A stretch of 64,000 nt of DNA, from positions 106,539,102-106,603,101 of the forward strand of contig NC_068985.1 of assembly GCF_001194135.2 (NCBI RefSeq), given 5' to 3'. Position 1 is the stretch's first letter. Every line of letters starts with the position of its first letter. The notes below the pieces were generated by a model. It was not told the origin of the DNA. It worked only from the letters and a program-made list of their open reading frames with translations, and ran no database searches. Positions 4,872 through 52,885 of this stretch are shown piece after piece. The stretch is from Octopus bimaculoides (lineage: Eukaryota). The position numbers and the translations under genes were made by a program.

Positions 4872-4992
4872 CTATTTTGATGAGACAGCTTGCAATGATC
4901 CTGAGCGATGAAAATGTACATTCTGCCATTTGCCATCCTTCCTTTGCCACACTCTTGTCTCCTCTGACTGAACAGTGATTGGAACACCGTCT
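4872..4992 (-). CDS. CaMKII: CaMKII last coding exon, hub C-terminus: (R)[39 protein letters not shown]
   Basis: Manual translation gives the CaMKII signature [21 protein letters not shown]. Acceptor gctattccAG; phase 2 start matches the upstream exon; TAG stop at 4872-4874. Confidence 0.97.
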
Positions 4993-5896: not shown

Positions 5897-6011
5897 CTGT
5901 CAATATACTGTGTGAGTCGAACATAGGCAATGCATGCTGCATCGTCACCAAGAAGGTGTACATGAGGGTTCAAGATTGTGGTGTTCAATGTCTTACTGTT
6001 CTTTGATAGCA
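5897..6011 (-). CDS. CaMKII: CaMKII hub exon: (V)[37 protein letters not shown](R)
   Basis: 115 nt, phase 1 to 2. Acceptor ttctccttgcAG, donor AG|GTAAAG. Typical Ca[28 protein letters not shown] motif. Confidence 0.97.
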
Positions 6012-13406: not shown

Positions 13407-15856
13407 TGTTTTTTGGTTAATTATAGTTAGTGTAGCATGCTTTACTACAGAAAATATGACTACTGTTTGACTTACCATTTGAACGTTTATTGTGAAGAAA
13501 TGTGTAGATATAACATAGTATGATGTGGACATGTGTGTGTGGGCCATTTGTTGATGGATTTTTTTAGTGTGAACTAGTATGAAGCATCTGGGCTGTATGA
13601 TGATGGATGATAAATGAATTAAACAAGGCTGGACATTAACACATATACCAAACCTGGATTGTAAGTTTTAAATAAACAAAATTCCATTTTTTTTTCTTGA
13701 GCATTCCAACCTAACAGAACTCTGTGCTTTTAACTATGGATTTAAACTACTTTGGAAGCTAGACGTTTCAGCAAAAAACAAAACAAAACTATTGAAAACA
13801 AATGGAAAATAAAAACAAACAAAAAATGAACAAGACAAAAATTGAGGAACAATTCAAATAACAACAACAACAATAGCAGCAACAACAAATATATTGCAGT
13901 AATATGATAGAGAAATTTCTATTTAAAAGGTGTTTCTAATTTAACATTTTAAAATATGAGGTTGCTGGAATTGAAAGAGATAGGAAGAGTGCTGGACTAA
14001 GTCTCTATTTTTACCATTCTTCTAAGTTATTAGTTGGAATTCTGTTGAAGTTTTATTGTAGTTTTCATCATCAAAATCTTATTAAATTAAATAACAGTAA
14101 TGAAATGTTTTTAATGTAATTAACTGTTATAGTTTAAAATATAAAAGACAATTTAATTGTTAAGATTATCAATTTCACTTTGAACAAGGTTACTGTTAGA
14201 CATCCAAGTTATGCAAGAATTAGTTACGAATACATTCCATCAAATTATCTTGTAACACCCAGCAACCTCAATGAAATGTTGGAATATGTCATAATTTATA
14301 AATACACCTAACATAATGAAAGGAAATACCCTGAAAAACTATATGCAAATATGTGTTTACGAATTTATTTCAGTGTGTATGTGTGTTCAGTGAATCTGTG
14401 TATATGTAGATGAATGTCTGACAGTAATAATAGCATTGATGTACTAAATACTTCCATACAATTGATCTACAATACAGATATGTGGCAGTGCTATTAGCCT
14501 ATATAACCCAGAGTGCTACACATCTCAACTCTTAGTTCAACAACCAGCTCACCATACCATTACTGTAAGTAATGTCACTTTGGACATCATTCACTGCCAC
14601 CATTATGTGAATCGTTTGTGAATAATAAGCATTTATATGTTCGATCTTAGTTTCCATAGTACTAAATGGATAAAAACTAAATGTTTCTCAATCATTTTCC
14701 CATGGGAAGAATTAAACTTAGCTATCTAAGCATTTCTCAGTTCCACAGTTATGCTGTAATGTACTGTAAAGTACACCACAGTATGGTACCTACTTACACT
14801 TACATAGACTGAACTGTTGAAAGTCATATCTTGGTTATGGACACAGTACATTGAACTGAAAATACACTGTGGTGTCTACTTACAATGACGTGGTCTGGGC
14901 TGTTAACAGTTAAATGTGCTGGTTATGAACCCAGTAGAGTGTAGGTGGTACAATAAGTTTTCACCTTTTTAGCTTTCATCCTACTAACCCAACTGTCCAC
15001 AACTTCTTTCCATTTTTTCACTCTGATATACATTAGTTGTTTATGAGAAAGTAAATGAGCTTAGTGGGGTTAATGCTTAATGCTCTAGGACCTCAATCTA
15101 AAAGCTTTACATTCAGTAACAAAATTTAACTGTGAAAAGTCTTATAACTATATACTTGACATAAATGTCAACTCAGTCTCATATATAGCATTTCAAAGTC
15201 TTATATACTATTCCAATGTCATATTTATAAGATAACCTATTTCTGTGTCACAACCCCTTCTTAGTGCCATATATTTTACCTCAGAGTTGTATAGCCTACC
15301 TTGATGGCATATTACTGCTTTCACAATGAGATATCCTATTTTTGTCACTTATCTTACATGATCCTTATGTATTCCACATCAAAGTTATATCCCACCCCAA
15401 TGTCACATATTCTTTTTCAAAATGACATTTATACCACTTTAATGTCAAATATCTTGTTTCCATGTTACTTACTCTGCAGGTGAAATCTTATCACAACCTG
15501 CCTCAATGTTGTATGTCTTCATTGTGAAAACCTTTCTTCGAAAAGAAGCCATGCTTTAGAACTATCACATCACTGCAATGTATACTTGTTGTTATAAGAT
15601 AAGCAATCAGGATGACGAATGGGGGAGGGCAAATACACAGGGAACACCTCAGCCAGTACAAATAAATACAAAACAGAAGAGGTGATAGAGTTAAGGAAGA
15701 GGAAGTAGGAGGCGAAAGACAACAAGGACAAGAAGATGAAGCAGTAGCTGCCTAAGATATCTAGCTGTAGCAATGAGCCACCTATGATCAGTCATCAGCA
15801 TCAGCATCATCATCATCACCAGCATCATCATTATGATCATCAGGTTCAGCACTTAC

Positions 15857-15967
15857 CAGGGTTGTCAGCAGGAAATTTGCCTTGTTCTACGATGGTGGGA
15901 GTCCGAGGGATACAATATTCCAATATTCCATCATTCTTAGATATTGTGTCTCTATGACAGTATTTAG
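15857..15967 (-). CDS. CaMKII: Candidate cassette exon inside the CaMKII hub: (A)KYCHRDTISKNDGILEYCIPRTPTIVEQGKFPADNP
   Basis: 111 nt, phase 1 to 1, open in the frame set by the flanking hub exons. Acceptor ttttactcttctctttactgaAG, donor CTG|GTAAGT. Non-repetitive sequence. No transcript evidence available. Confidence 0.55.
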
Positions 15968-16815
15968 CTTCAGTAAAGAGAAGAGTAAAACAGGGCATTA
16001 AAACCACCACTTCATGGGCTAGTGAGCTGGCAAGCTGGCTGGACAGTTAGTTTGTTAAAGCCGCTTCTGCTGGCACAGCTAAACATTCTAGAGTAAGTCT
16101 TCAGTTGTCCTTCAGCAAACACAGTGTAATAGTCACAGCTAGTTCATGCTATCCACATGTGGAATATGGTTCTCTTATGGATAATATGGTATTCTTACAA
16201 AAAATATGGGATAACTTATGAAAAGTAAGGATGTATTATGGTCAAAATGGTTAACTAAAGAAGTTGCTTGTGTCATAAAGAATAGAGCAATTTGTAATGA
16301 ATAGCAAATAATACATAATGAAAATATCAGTGCAAATTAGTTTAAATTCAGATATGTATATAAATATATATTACATCTGAACAATAGAAGCTGTGGCAAT
16401 ATAAATAATTTTTCATAAAATAAATGACATTAAATTTTCTCTTACATTTTTCAAGCATAGAAAAACTCTTCTTCGTAATGCAGCAGGATAAAAAATAAGT
16501 GTGAAATACATGGGATCAAAAGTTATTTCAGCTCATTCATAATATTTAGTATCATAATGAAGAAAGAGTACATTATGGCTTGAAATACTTAAAGAAAGCA
16601 CAGAATGTCATCTATTTTATGATATGAAAAAAAAGTTACATTGCCATGCATTCTTTAATTCAAATTCTCAATACTATCAATACTACATACATTTTCTCAA
16701 TATATATATATATATATATCAAATCTTATCTTTCTATCTACATGTGTACATGCATGTGTGTGTGTATGTGTGTGTGTATGTGTGTGTGCATGTGTGTGTG
16801 TATGTATGTGTGTGT

Positions 16816-16863
<48 letters not shown>

Positions 16864-17360: not shown

Positions 17361-18219
17361 TATGTATGTATGTATGTATGTATGTATGTATGTATGTATA
17401 TATATATATATATNNNNNNNNNNNNNNNNNNNNNNNNNNNNNNNNNNNNNNNNNNNNNNNNNNNNNNNNNNNNNNNNNNNNNNNNNNNNNNNNNNNNNNN
17501 NNNNNNNNNNNNNNNNNNNNNNNNNNNNNNNNNNNNNNNNNNNNNNNNNATAGGTGCAGGCAAAGCTGTATAGTTAAGAAGTTTGCTTCCCAGCCACATA
17601 TTTTTGGTCTCACTGCATGGTACCTTGGGTAAATAAATGTCTTGCGAGACAATGGTAAAAGAAAGAGATCAGTCGCACACGCATGTATGCCTGTATGTGT
17701 ATGTGTGTGTATGAGTGTATGCATGTGTTTGTTTACATTTGCACTGAGAAGATGAGATGAATAAAAAATGTTTAACTTGAAAAACAAGTAGGAGTTAATG
17801 ATAGGAAGGGCATCAGACTGTAAAACAATGCCTCGATAATATATTTGTCAAACCCATGCTACCATGAAATAATACAAGTAAAACAAATTACACACACACA
17901 CACATGCTACAGAACCTCACAACACTAGATACCAATATTCAAGTATAATCTAAGGCCTAATTAGATAACCTATGAATAAAACCAAACAACACCAATGTAA
18001 GTGATTTCCAGAAACTATGAACCCACAAACACTTTCCACTTTACAAGAATGAAAGACAACTCAAAATAACAAGACTAAGATACAAGAAATCCACAACCAA
18101 GCATAACAAATGTGTATTCTCATCATTAGCTGCCAAACAGATATCACTATGGTTTTGACACCTGGGCAGTACAATCTGATCCAGCAGTGTCACATATAAC
18201 TGGCACTATGTCAACTGCA

Positions 18220-24789: not shown

Positions 24790-25268
24790 TATGACCGAGA
24801 CCTTTGGAAATGTGCTGTGCGTGAGAAGACCCGGCAAGCCAAGTAAGATNNNNNNNNNNNNNNNNNNNNNNNNNNNNNNNNNNNNNNNNNNNNNNNNNNN
24901 NNNNNNNNNNNNNNNNNNNNNNNNNNNNNNNNNNNNNNNNNNNNNNNNNNNNNNNNNNNNNNNNNNNNNNNNNNNNNNNNNNNNNNNNNNNNNNNNNNNN
25001 NNNNNNNNNNNNNNNNNNNNNNNNNNNNGGCACATAAAAGACACCATTTCGAGCGTGGCTGTTTTCGTGCGGGTGACACGTAAAAGCACCCACTACACTC
25101 TCTGAGTGGTTGGTGTTAGGAAGGGCATCCAGCTGTAGAAACTCTGCCAAATCAGACTGGAGCCTGGTGTTGCCATCCGGTTTCACCAGTCCTCAGTCAA
25201 ATCGTCCAACCCATGCCAGCATGGAAAGCGGACGTTAAACGATGATGATGATGATGATGATGATGATG
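24790..25268 (+). mobile_element. RTE LINE 3' end (end of ORF, gap, 3' UTR, (GAT)n tail)
   Basis: gaccgagacctttggaaatgtgctgtgcgtgagaagacccgg resembles the RTE ORF end and matches, on the opposite strand, the 47950-48000 copy. Same 3' UTR as the other copies. Confidence 0.85.
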
Positions 25269-26817: not shown

Positions 26818-26912
26818 CATGATCAAAATAGAATTTATGAAAATCCATTCCAACTATCAGATTTCCCAAAGCTTCTGGTTCAAAGCTTGTGACATGAGGG
26901 TCAACAAATCTT
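26818..26912 (-). CDS. CaMKII: CaMKII hub exon: (T)[31 protein letters not shown]
   Basis: 95 nt, phase 2 to 1. Acceptor ttttgtctttcAG, donor G|[26 protein letters not shown] motif. Confidence 0.97.
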
Positions 26913-43046: not shown

Positions 43047-43659
43047 NNNNNNNNNNNNNNNNNNNNNNNNNNNNNNNNNNNNNNNNNNNNNNNNNNNNNN
43101 NNNNNNNNNNNNNNNNNNNNNNNNNNNNNNNNNNNNNNNNNNNTACACACACACACACACACACATTAGCAAAGCAGGTCTTGCCACTGACTCAAGAAAA
43201 TATCTAGTAAATGATCTACAAGCACGCGAGCAGACTGAGTCCTAAACTTGTTTCATTTGTGAAGGCAAATGATTTACAAGGCACCAGAAGGCTTCAAGAG
43301 ACACATACGTGTCCACAGAACATGATTACTGCTTTATTTTACTGAATCCTCATTTATCATTCATGAAAAGCCATCATATATATATATATATATATATACA
43401 TATATACACACATACACACATATATTATACATATATACACATACATATATAGTCCTACACATTTATGCATATTCACATACACACATATATTCATACAAGA
43501 CTGCAGTTAAGTTAATGATAATAAGGTCCTTAAAAAACTGATAGATAACTTGGAGGTGGAGAAACGTAAAAATCAATACATAAAACCAACCCCATACGGT
43601 CAGTTCATCATACTAAAGGAGACGGTACTCTCCTCCAGAAGAGCATCCTGCAGGAAGCA

Positions 43660-46398: not shown

Positions 46399-47300
46399 TC
46401 ATCATCATCATCGTTTAACGTCCGCTTTCCATGCTAGCATGGGTTGGACGATTTGACTGAGGACTGGTGAAACCGGATGGCAACACCAGGCTCCAGTCTG
46501 ATTTGGCAGAGTTTCTACAGCTGGATGCCCTTCCTAACGCCAACCACTCAGAGAGTGTAGTGGGTGCTTTTACGTGTCACCCGCACGAAAACGGCCACGC
46601 TCGAAATGGTGTCTTTTATGTGCCACCCGCACAAGCCAGTCCAGGGGCACTGGCAACGATCTCGCTCGAAAATCCTACAGGAGCCAGTCAGGCGGTACTG
46701 GCAACGGCCACGCTCAAAATGGTNNNNNNNNNNNNNNNNNNNNNNNNNNNNNNNNNNNNNNNNNNNNNNNNNNNNNNNNNNNNNNNNNNNNNNNNNNNNN
46801 NNNNNNNNNNNNNNNNNNNNNNNNNNNNNNNNNNNNNNNNNNNNNNNNNNNNNNNNNNNNNNNNNNNNNNNNNNNNNNNNNNNNNNNNNNNNNNNNNNNN
46901 NNNNNNNNNNNNNNNNNNNNNNNNNNNNNNNNNNNNNNNNNNNNNNNNNNNNNNNNNNNNNNNNNNNNNNNNNNNNNNNNNNNNNNNNNNNNNNNNNNNN
47001 NNNNNNNNNNNNNNNNNNNNNNNNNNNCGGGTTCCCTCAACTGTTAGGGTGTGGCACTTTTTCACGCAGCTATCCTCCTCCATTCTCACCACATGTCCAT
47101 ACCAGCGCAATCGTCTCTCTTGCACGCCACAACTGATGCTTCTAATGTTCAGCTTTTCTCTCAAGATACTTACACTCTGACGGGTATTCACATTGACATT
47201 ACACATCCAACGGAGCATACTGGCTTCATTCCTTGCGAGCTTACGTATGTCCTCAGCAGTTACAGCCCATGTTTCACTGCCATGTAGCATGGTTGTTCGT
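46399..47300 (-). mobile_element. RTE LINE 3' fragment with C-terminal ORF remnant
   Basis: YDACVRTTMLHGSETWAVTAEDIRKLARNEASMLRWMC...RRLRWYGHVVRM is the typical RTE-clade post-RT domain. The 3' UTR and (GAT)n tail follow across a gap. Confidence 0.9.
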
Positions 47301-52807: not shown

Positions 52808-52885
52808 CTGACGTTCCTAACCAGCATTGTCTGCTCAGAAGGTCCTGCTCTGTGGAACAGCGAGAGTTCGTCTTGGAAAACGAAA
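52808..52885 (-). CDS. CaMKII: Candidate CaMKII variable-linker exon: SFSKTNSRCSTEQDLLSRQCWLGTS
   Basis: Donor CAG|GTAGGT ending in phase 1. A long AG-free pyrimidine tract lies upstream. Three possible acceptors (exon starts 52885, 52871, 52849) share this open frame. Locally CpG-rich. Confidence 0.45.

Follow-up and report, generated by a model that had tools for sequence, protein, structure and literature searches.

A probable coleoid-wide cassette exon that extends the hub pocket loop of cephalopod CaMKII

Organization of the CaMKII gene in the analyzed window

The window analyzed here, a 64,000-nucleotide stretch of the Octopus bimaculoides genome (contig NC_068985.1), carries on its minus strand the 3′ part of the cephalopod CaMKII gene. 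Its exons were placed by tBLASTn with hub proteins and long RefSeq isoforms; the kinase and regulatory exons lie outside the window. All translated window exons are 100% identical to proteins of O. bimaculoides, O. sinensis, and O. vulgaris, and the closest short models to the hub exons are O. bimaculoides UniProt entries from 2015. Reading along the minus strand, two variable-linker cassette exons, 52885..52808, encoding (I)SFSKTNSRCSTEQDLLSRQCWLGTS, and 40574..40473, encoding (A)KKGNLMHDDKSTGTMCMASLVNMSTSSKDGPTC(C) behind an AAG|C acceptor, are followed by the constitutive hub exons A (28669..28594; (G)RKQEIIKLTEQLIAAITSSDFEGYT), B (26912..26818, ending in phase 1), and C (6011..5897, beginning with (V) and ending with (R)), and by the last coding exon D (4992..4872), which ends with the stop codon. 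The second linker cassette, KKGNLMHDDKSTGTMCMASLVNMSTSSKDGPTC (40473-40574), is also kept in Sepia (L001:4139-4225) and in Argonauta.

Exon B ends with ...FHKFYFDH (TTT GAT CAT G|gtaagt, at 26818), and exon C starts with (V)LSKNSK (cag|TG CTA TCA AAG, at 6011), so that the 20.8-kb intron separating these two hub exons is a phase 1 intron. Runs of N, marking assembly gaps, occupy positions 1621-1796, 17414-17549, 24850-25028, 30280-30289, 31816-32457, 34760-34780, 43047-43143, and 46724-47027. Since two of these runs fall inside the 20.8-kb intron, more small conserved elements may hide in it.

A phase-symmetric cassette exon within the hub intron

The intron between the FYFDH and VLSKNSK exons houses an alternative cassette exon of 111 nt (15967..15857, minus strand, phase 1/1), where the minus-strand sequence runs ...ttttactcttctctttactgaag|CTAAATAC...GACAACCCTG|gtaagt. 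Entered in phase 1 with the G supplied by the upstream exon, the cassette reads AKYCHRDTISKNDGILEYCIPRTPTIVEQGKFPADNP free of stops and leaves a G for the next codon. It thus has an AG acceptor (AAG|C), a GT donor (CTG|GTAAGT), a length that is a multiple of three, and an open frame in register with its neighbors. The initial annotation had described a 111-nt phase-symmetric, stop-free segment with a CTG|GTAAGT donor between FYFDH and VLSKNSK, and this description proved correct to the base on the minus strand. The cassette is not a variable-linker exon, as it lies downstream of hub exons A and B and not between the regulatory segment and RKQEIIK.

The A at position −3 of the AAG acceptor is a weak choice; the linker exon 40574..40473, likewise in use in the CaMKII gene, has the same AAG|C acceptor. 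Scored with a crude splice-site matrix, the acceptor (2.5) and the donor (6.8) fall within the range of the gene's constitutive exons. With the same crude matrix, the 20.8-kb intron holds two open, phase 1-symmetric pseudo-exons of comparable quality, against 0.12 expected per dinucleotide shuffle, which makes the cassette somewhat unusual already on sequence alone. Its reality is settled by the comparative and database evidence given below.

Deposited isoforms that include or skip the exon

The initial annotation had proposed an in-frame 37-residue cassette in the CaMKII hub that is included or skipped. In support of this notion, the exact window peptide was found in 50 deposited CaMKII proteins of O. 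bimaculoides, O. sinensis, and O. vulgaris, alongside sister isoforms lacking it. The insert-bearing proteins were retrieved with a 207-aa query (for Argonauta) and a 444-aa query (for the Octopus isoforms), and they imply the junctions 26818>15967 and 15857>6011, the very pair that had been predicted from the letters of the window. The exon is included in O. bimaculoides XP_052823861 to XP_052823875 (isoforms X1-X7 and X9-X15 but not X8; for example XP_052823862.1, isoform X2), in many O. sinensis RefSeq isoforms, in O. vulgaris QHX41517.1 and CAI9723207.1, and in the 2015 O. bimaculoides models (UniProt A0A0L8GYT6 and A0A0L8GXP2). It is skipped in O. bimaculoides X8 (XP_052823868.1) and X16-X19 (XP_052823876-79), in O. 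sinensis X9 and X31, in O. vulgaris QHX41518.1, and in the 2015 models A0A0L8GXG3 and A0A0L8GXU4. Both products of one gene are therefore on record for O. bimaculoides, for O. vulgaris, and among the 2015 models, and because both forms are deposited, the exon counts as annotated as alternative; the majority of the annotated Octopus isoforms include it. The evidence for inclusion consists of deposited protein records, and RefSeq and UniProt models can contain predicted exons; among the proteins collected, none of the insert-bearing ones derived from a Logan transcript contig.

The impression that such an isoform had never been described was thus mistaken for the databases, where the exon is already annotated, and held for the literature, where a search for the isoform or its accessions found no paper discussing the insert. 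The cassette is accordingly not new as a sequence feature, and as far as the literature was searched it is functionally uncharacterized.

Conservation in Argonauta and Sepia

The orthologous locus of the cuttlefish Sepia (Acanthosepion) pharaonis (L001) was reached through a cluster member of the Octopus hub model. The tBLASTn check of cuttlefish suggested in the initial annotation returned AKYWRREPVAQNAGILEYCIPRTPTILEQSKIPADN in the orthologous S. pharaonis intron (E 3e-15). The similarity between Octopus and S. pharaonis extends past the exon through the acceptor tract and the donor. When the two introns were compared as DNA, the best match (263 bp at window 16002..15740, 77% identical, E 1e-53) contained the cassette and was the only single-copy conserved block, the remaining matches being microsatellite. 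A second seemingly conserved block (window 16842..16700) was dismissed as a (CA)n microsatellite with hundreds of matches in every locus. Octopus and Sepia share the acceptor tract CTCTTCTCTTTACTGAAG|C and the donor CTG|GTAAGT letter for letter, and in the alignment of Octopus, Argonauta, and Sepia the 111-nt exon contains no indel, whereas its flanks contain several.

A second Sepia species is represented at this locus by nine Logan genomic contigs, with an intron 93.4% identical to that of S. pharaonis. Between the two Sepia species, the exon is identical at 110 of 111 positions, the sole change being synonymous, and the 60 nt upstream and 49 nt downstream of it are 100% identical. In Argonauta hians the cassette is present on two contigs, BAAFZT010000101.1 (L003) and BAAFZT010000040.1 (L004). 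The Argonauta protein GAB1610141.1 reads FYFDH-AKYCHKDTMSKTDGILEYCIPRTPTVLEQGKFPADNP-VLSKNSK, with five substitutions in the insert relative to Octopus, and has a twin protein without the insert. The Argonauta CaMKII 3′ region exists as two near-identical copies on these contigs, probably haplotigs, and of the gene models at the two copies, GAB1610141.1 includes the cassette and GAB1604667.1 skips it. The Argonauta annotation pipeline took Octopus proteins as homology hints (PMC12682272), so its model is not independent evidence for the exon. The frame is open in Argonauta and in both Sepia species, and the splice sites are kept in Argonauta and Sepia; the frameshifts, stops, or lost splice sites that had been named among the grounds for abandoning the exon did not appear. 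Because the cuttlefish transcript-derived sequences retrieved (Logan contig L002 and model CAE1300189) both lack the exon, the case for its inclusion in decapodiforms comes wholly from conservation.

The conserved intron flanks differ in extent. The upstream flank (16040..15968, minus strand) includes the pyrimidine tract CTCTTCTCTTTACTGAAG shared by Octopus and Sepia; conservation of the flank extends as far as 16002 in the comparison with Sepia and 16040 in that with Argonauta, with positions −60 to −1 being those that are invariant between the two Sepia species. Within it, a conserved TTTTAAT (16003..15997), about 31-32 nt upstream of the exon, is the likely branch point. Besides the GTAAGT donor, the downstream flank (15856..15569, minus strand) has a (GAT)n-rich stretch and other conserved sequence; its conservation reaches 15740 when Sepia is compared and 15569 when Argonauta is, and the flank presumably regulates splicing. 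It contains a 25-nt intronic element, TAGGTGGCTCATTGCTACAGCTAGA (15784..15760, minus strand), about 75-95 nt past the donor, that is nearly invariant among Octopus, Argonauta, and Sepia. RNAalifold gave no covariation support for a conserved RNA structure in the exon and downstream flank (covariation term +1.01).

No sign of a transposon or repeat origin was found, the cassette being single copy in the window and in loci L001, L003, and L004. A HMMER scan of 1.84 billion representative proteins yielded no transposon protein and no homologue outside cephalopods; it returned only the Sepia ORF and two low-complexity matches, one to a PQEPIVEEEGKFDV-repeat protein and one to a bacterial protein, both of which were rejected as spurious. 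An origin by duplication of a linker exon was considered from the likeness of TISKNDGILE (15918-15947) to the conserved linker segment VAKKNDGIKE and was likewise set aside, the likeness being significant for Octopus only (shuffle P 0.002) and weaker in Argonauta (0.045) and Sepia (0.14); it is probably coincidental or derived.

Selection on the coding frame

Nei-Gojobori estimates of omega for the cassette are 0.25 between Octopus and Argonauta, 0.26 between Octopus and Sepia, and 0.16 between Argonauta and Sepia. Differences between Octopus and Sepia fall at codon positions one, two, and three in the numbers 9, 2, and 12. When the same number of substitutions was placed at random in a Monte Carlo procedure, the frame stayed open with as many synonymous changes as observed, or more, with P 0.003 for Octopus-Sepia and 0.0004 for Argonauta-Sepia, and the other two frames of the cassette contain 1-5 stops. 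For the same Octopus-Sepia pair, the constitutive hub exons gave an omega of 0.012 with a dS of 1.09, compared with 0.26 and 0.63 for the cassette. Purifying selection acts on the protein sequence of the cassette, far less strongly than on the hub core, and on the nucleotide sequence of the intron flanks. Faster protein change, slower synonymous change, and conserved intron flanks together form the signature of a regulated alternative exon, and in these alignments the cassette shows this usual signature.

Position of the insert in the hub

The flanking exons match the CaMKII association (hub) domain (Pfam PF08332, precomputed on all matches), and in the Argonauta protein (P0124) PF08332 is matched in two pieces around the insert. 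In a PDB sequence search, all 19 distinct solved hubs matched query residues 2-57 and 95-166, and since each chain runs from one stretch straight into the other, this junction is free of inserts in every solved hub. In human CaMKIIalpha, the corresponding point separates Asn401 from Leu402. In CaMKIIalpha, residues Asn401-Val410 form the pocket loop, which follows the N-terminal helical part, precedes the first beta strand, and lies on the upper rim of the GHB-analogue cavity; the loop carries the alpha-specific Trp403, is flexible, adopts in and out conformations, varies between structures, and affects hub stability and ligand access, and a contact with the docked kinase domain had been suggested for it earlier (PMC12148480). 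Inclusion of the cassette, which inserts at the start of the loop, extends it from 10 to 47 residues.

We modeled the Argonauta protein with AlphaFold2 from a 115-sequence alignment. The pLDDT values were 27-45 over the insert and 88-94 over the beta sheet, and the model predicts no stable fold for the insert. A control without the insert showed modest confidence around residues 131-160, just before the junction. The confidence of the helices just before the insert was about 49-64 without it and 40-45 with it; because both models have low overall confidence, the comparison supports no conclusion on hub stability.

Other length changes were seen in this region. In Argonauta hub exon C (L003:73858-73986 and L004:73225-73353), five residues of the pocket loop are tandemly duplicated relative to Octopus, and the genomic sequence of each contig shows this. 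Together with the snail inserts described below, this duplication indicates that the junction tolerates length change. The RefSeq CaMKII beta-like isoform X5 of the fish Labrus bergylta (P0035) reads FYFDN-HPSLPS-VLSKNSKP, with 6 extra residues at this junction. Many short ORFs with apparent junction inserts starting G-K, G-I, or C-E, drawn from Logan, ENA, and bird genome models, were rejected, as they result from read-through of the phase 1 intron (G|GTAAG.. or T|GTGAG..; examples P0006-P0008, P0015, P0016, P0026, P0048, and P0112-P0116) and are not isoforms. Such read-through ORFs could mislead searches for hub inserts.

A candidate kinase-consensus core in the insert

The first third of the insert is variable (AKYCHRDTISKND versus AKYWRREPVAQNA), and the first cysteine of the insert is not conserved, making a conserved disulfide unlikely. 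The core GILEYCIPRTPT(I/V)(V/L)EQxKxPADN is nearly invariant, and the most conserved stretch is IPRTPT(I/V), present in Octopus, Argonauta, and Sepia. The CaMKII substrate or docking consensus is R/K-X-X-phi-X-R/K-X-X-S/T-phi (10.1101/2020.10.25.354241). In the insert, I20-P-R22-T-P-T25-I26 agrees with it at four of five positions (phi at −5, R at −3, T at 0, and phi at +1), the residue at −8 being Glu and not basic. By a rough estimate, phi-X-R/K-X-X-S/T-phi is expected by chance in about 4% of 37-mers, and the Pro at −1 may be unfavorable. P-R-T-P also fits the generic proline-directed P-X-S/T-P pattern. The fit of IPRTPT(I/V) suggests that the loop extension could be phosphorylated by the kinase domain or dock onto it.

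Alternative readings of the segment

An open stretch of 111 nt between an AG and a GT might occur by chance in a long AT-rich intron and never be spliced in, as long introns contain many AG...GT pairs, the segment was picked after the fact, and the A at −3 makes its acceptor weak. A shuffled intron is expected to hold only 0.12 such segments, however, the exon and its splice sites are conserved in Argonauta and Sepia, and the identical peptide occurs in 50 deposited proteins; this comparison refutes the chance reading, to which we assign a negligible probability. The block could instead be conserved for a non-coding role, for instance as an intronic enhancer or a splicing silencer, and be open only by accident, having been drawn into gene models ab initio and then spread between species by homology annotation. 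The intron flanks are indeed about as conserved as the exon, and the Argonauta annotation made use of Octopus protein hints, but the substitutions avoid second codon positions (9/2/12), the excess of synonymous changes is hard to obtain at random (P ~0.003 and 0.0004) while the other two frames hold 1-5 stops, indels are absent from the 111 nt and present several times in the flanks, both splice sites are perfectly conserved, and inclusion and skipping are both deposited for O. vulgaris (QHX41517.1 and QHX41518.1). We therefore regard a non-coding element as highly improbable.

A different possibility accepts the exon as real and holds that its inclusion breaks hub assembly, yielding monomeric, lower-order, or dominant-negative subunits. 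A 37-residue insert in a compact NTF2-like domain could disturb folding, the AlphaFold confidence of the preceding helices falls (from ~49-64 to 40-45) when the insert is present, and earlier work suggested that hub splicing can affect oligomerization (10.1101/721589). Yet the two AlphaFold models, neither of them confident overall, differ little; the insert enters a flexible loop that varies between structures (PMC12148480); the same junction tolerates the snail inserts and the 5-residue Argonauta duplication; and the exon is included in most annotated Octopus isoforms, an odd pattern if its effect were purely disruptive. A hub-breaking role is thus distinctly unlikely. We favor the reading that the single cephalopod CaMKII gene has in 15967..15857 an authentic cassette exon that coleoids, both octopods and cuttlefish, have kept, at a probability of roughly 85%, a figure given jointly for this reading and the proposal for the function of the insert.

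A proposed role for the loop extension

The initial annotation had hypothesized that the insert changes holoenzyme stoichiometry or adds an interaction surface. The insertion site, in the pocket loop at the rim of the cavity, is not evidently an oligomer interface, so the insert is at least as likely to affect the docking of the kinase on the hub or access to the cavity as to change the number of subunits. We tentatively propose, at odds well short of even, that the insert would act as a flexible extension that leaves the beta-sheet core and the ring assembly intact, would change how the hub cavity is reached or how the kinase domain docks on the hub, and would thereby tune the threshold of activation by Ca2+/calmodulin. 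Through its IPRTPT(I/V) core, the insert may also be autophosphorylated by a kinase domain of the same holoenzyme or occupy one transiently. Rather doubtful is a more specific version, in which the optional exon would place a conserved substrate-like docking motif in the pocket loop, so that the kinase domains of the same holoenzyme could bind or phosphorylate the hub itself. If this were true, the compact autoinhibited state, the activation threshold, or subunit exchange would have a hub-encoded regulator under splicing control, for which vertebrate CaMKII has no described counterpart. A concrete, testable hypothesis thus follows from where the insert sits in the pocket loop and from its conserved kinase-consensus core.

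Comparison with known CaMKII splicing

The CaMKII hub is usually treated as constitutive, and splicing diversity is assigned to the linker. The octopus and cuttlefish lineages separated some 250-300 million years ago. On the reading favored here, coleoid cephalopods, with one CaMKII gene and large brains, would have kept an optional 37-residue loop extension since that split, and the insert would offer a natural experiment on hub-mediated regulation. Recent work has shown allosteric effects of the hub, above all of its pocket loop, on activation and ligand binding.

The nearest counterparts of the window exon are the deposited Octopus CaMKII isoforms, which carry the same peptide at the same junction with no difference at the sequence level; they are database records and carry no functional description. 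Variable-linker cassettes (vertebrate exons 13-21; in the window 52885..52808 and 40574..40473) are likewise phase-symmetric, optional, and relatively fast-evolving, and are thought to tune activation (10.1101/721589). The linker exons, however, sit between the regulatory segment and the hub, whereas the octopus cassette lies inside the hub, between its helical part and the first beta strand.

Outside cephalopods, hygrophilan snails, namely Physella acuta (isoforms X5 and X14; P0272 and P0298) and Biomphalaria glabrata (isoform X3; P0289), have an optional insert of 22-23 residues at the identical phase 1 junction, FYFDH-ANAVETISLDPAMSGDGSEGPPR-VLSKNSK, or with ANAVETNSPLDPTQDGSDLPPR in its place, which also begins with Ala. 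The similarity between the snail and cephalopod inserts is not significant (shuffle P 0.4-0.98), and the snail insert, known here from RefSeq proteins alone, may represent either an independent exonization or divergence beyond recognition.

In our literature search, the closest hub splicing event was the human CaMKIIbeta "short-hub" variant, in which an alternative splice site in hub exon 23 removes 26 hub residues and the EC50 for Ca2+/CaM shifts from 25 to 43 nM, showing that hub variants can alter activation (10.1101/721589). Both cases are splicing within the hub; the short-hub form, however, is a vertebrate deletion made with an alternative splice site elsewhere in the domain, whereas the octopus form is a cassette insertion. 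The structural position of the octopus insert is that of the vertebrate CaMKIIalpha pocket loop, but the vertebrate loop has 10 residues and varies by point substitution (Trp versus Leu), whereas the octopus loop reaches 47 residues by means of an optional exon.
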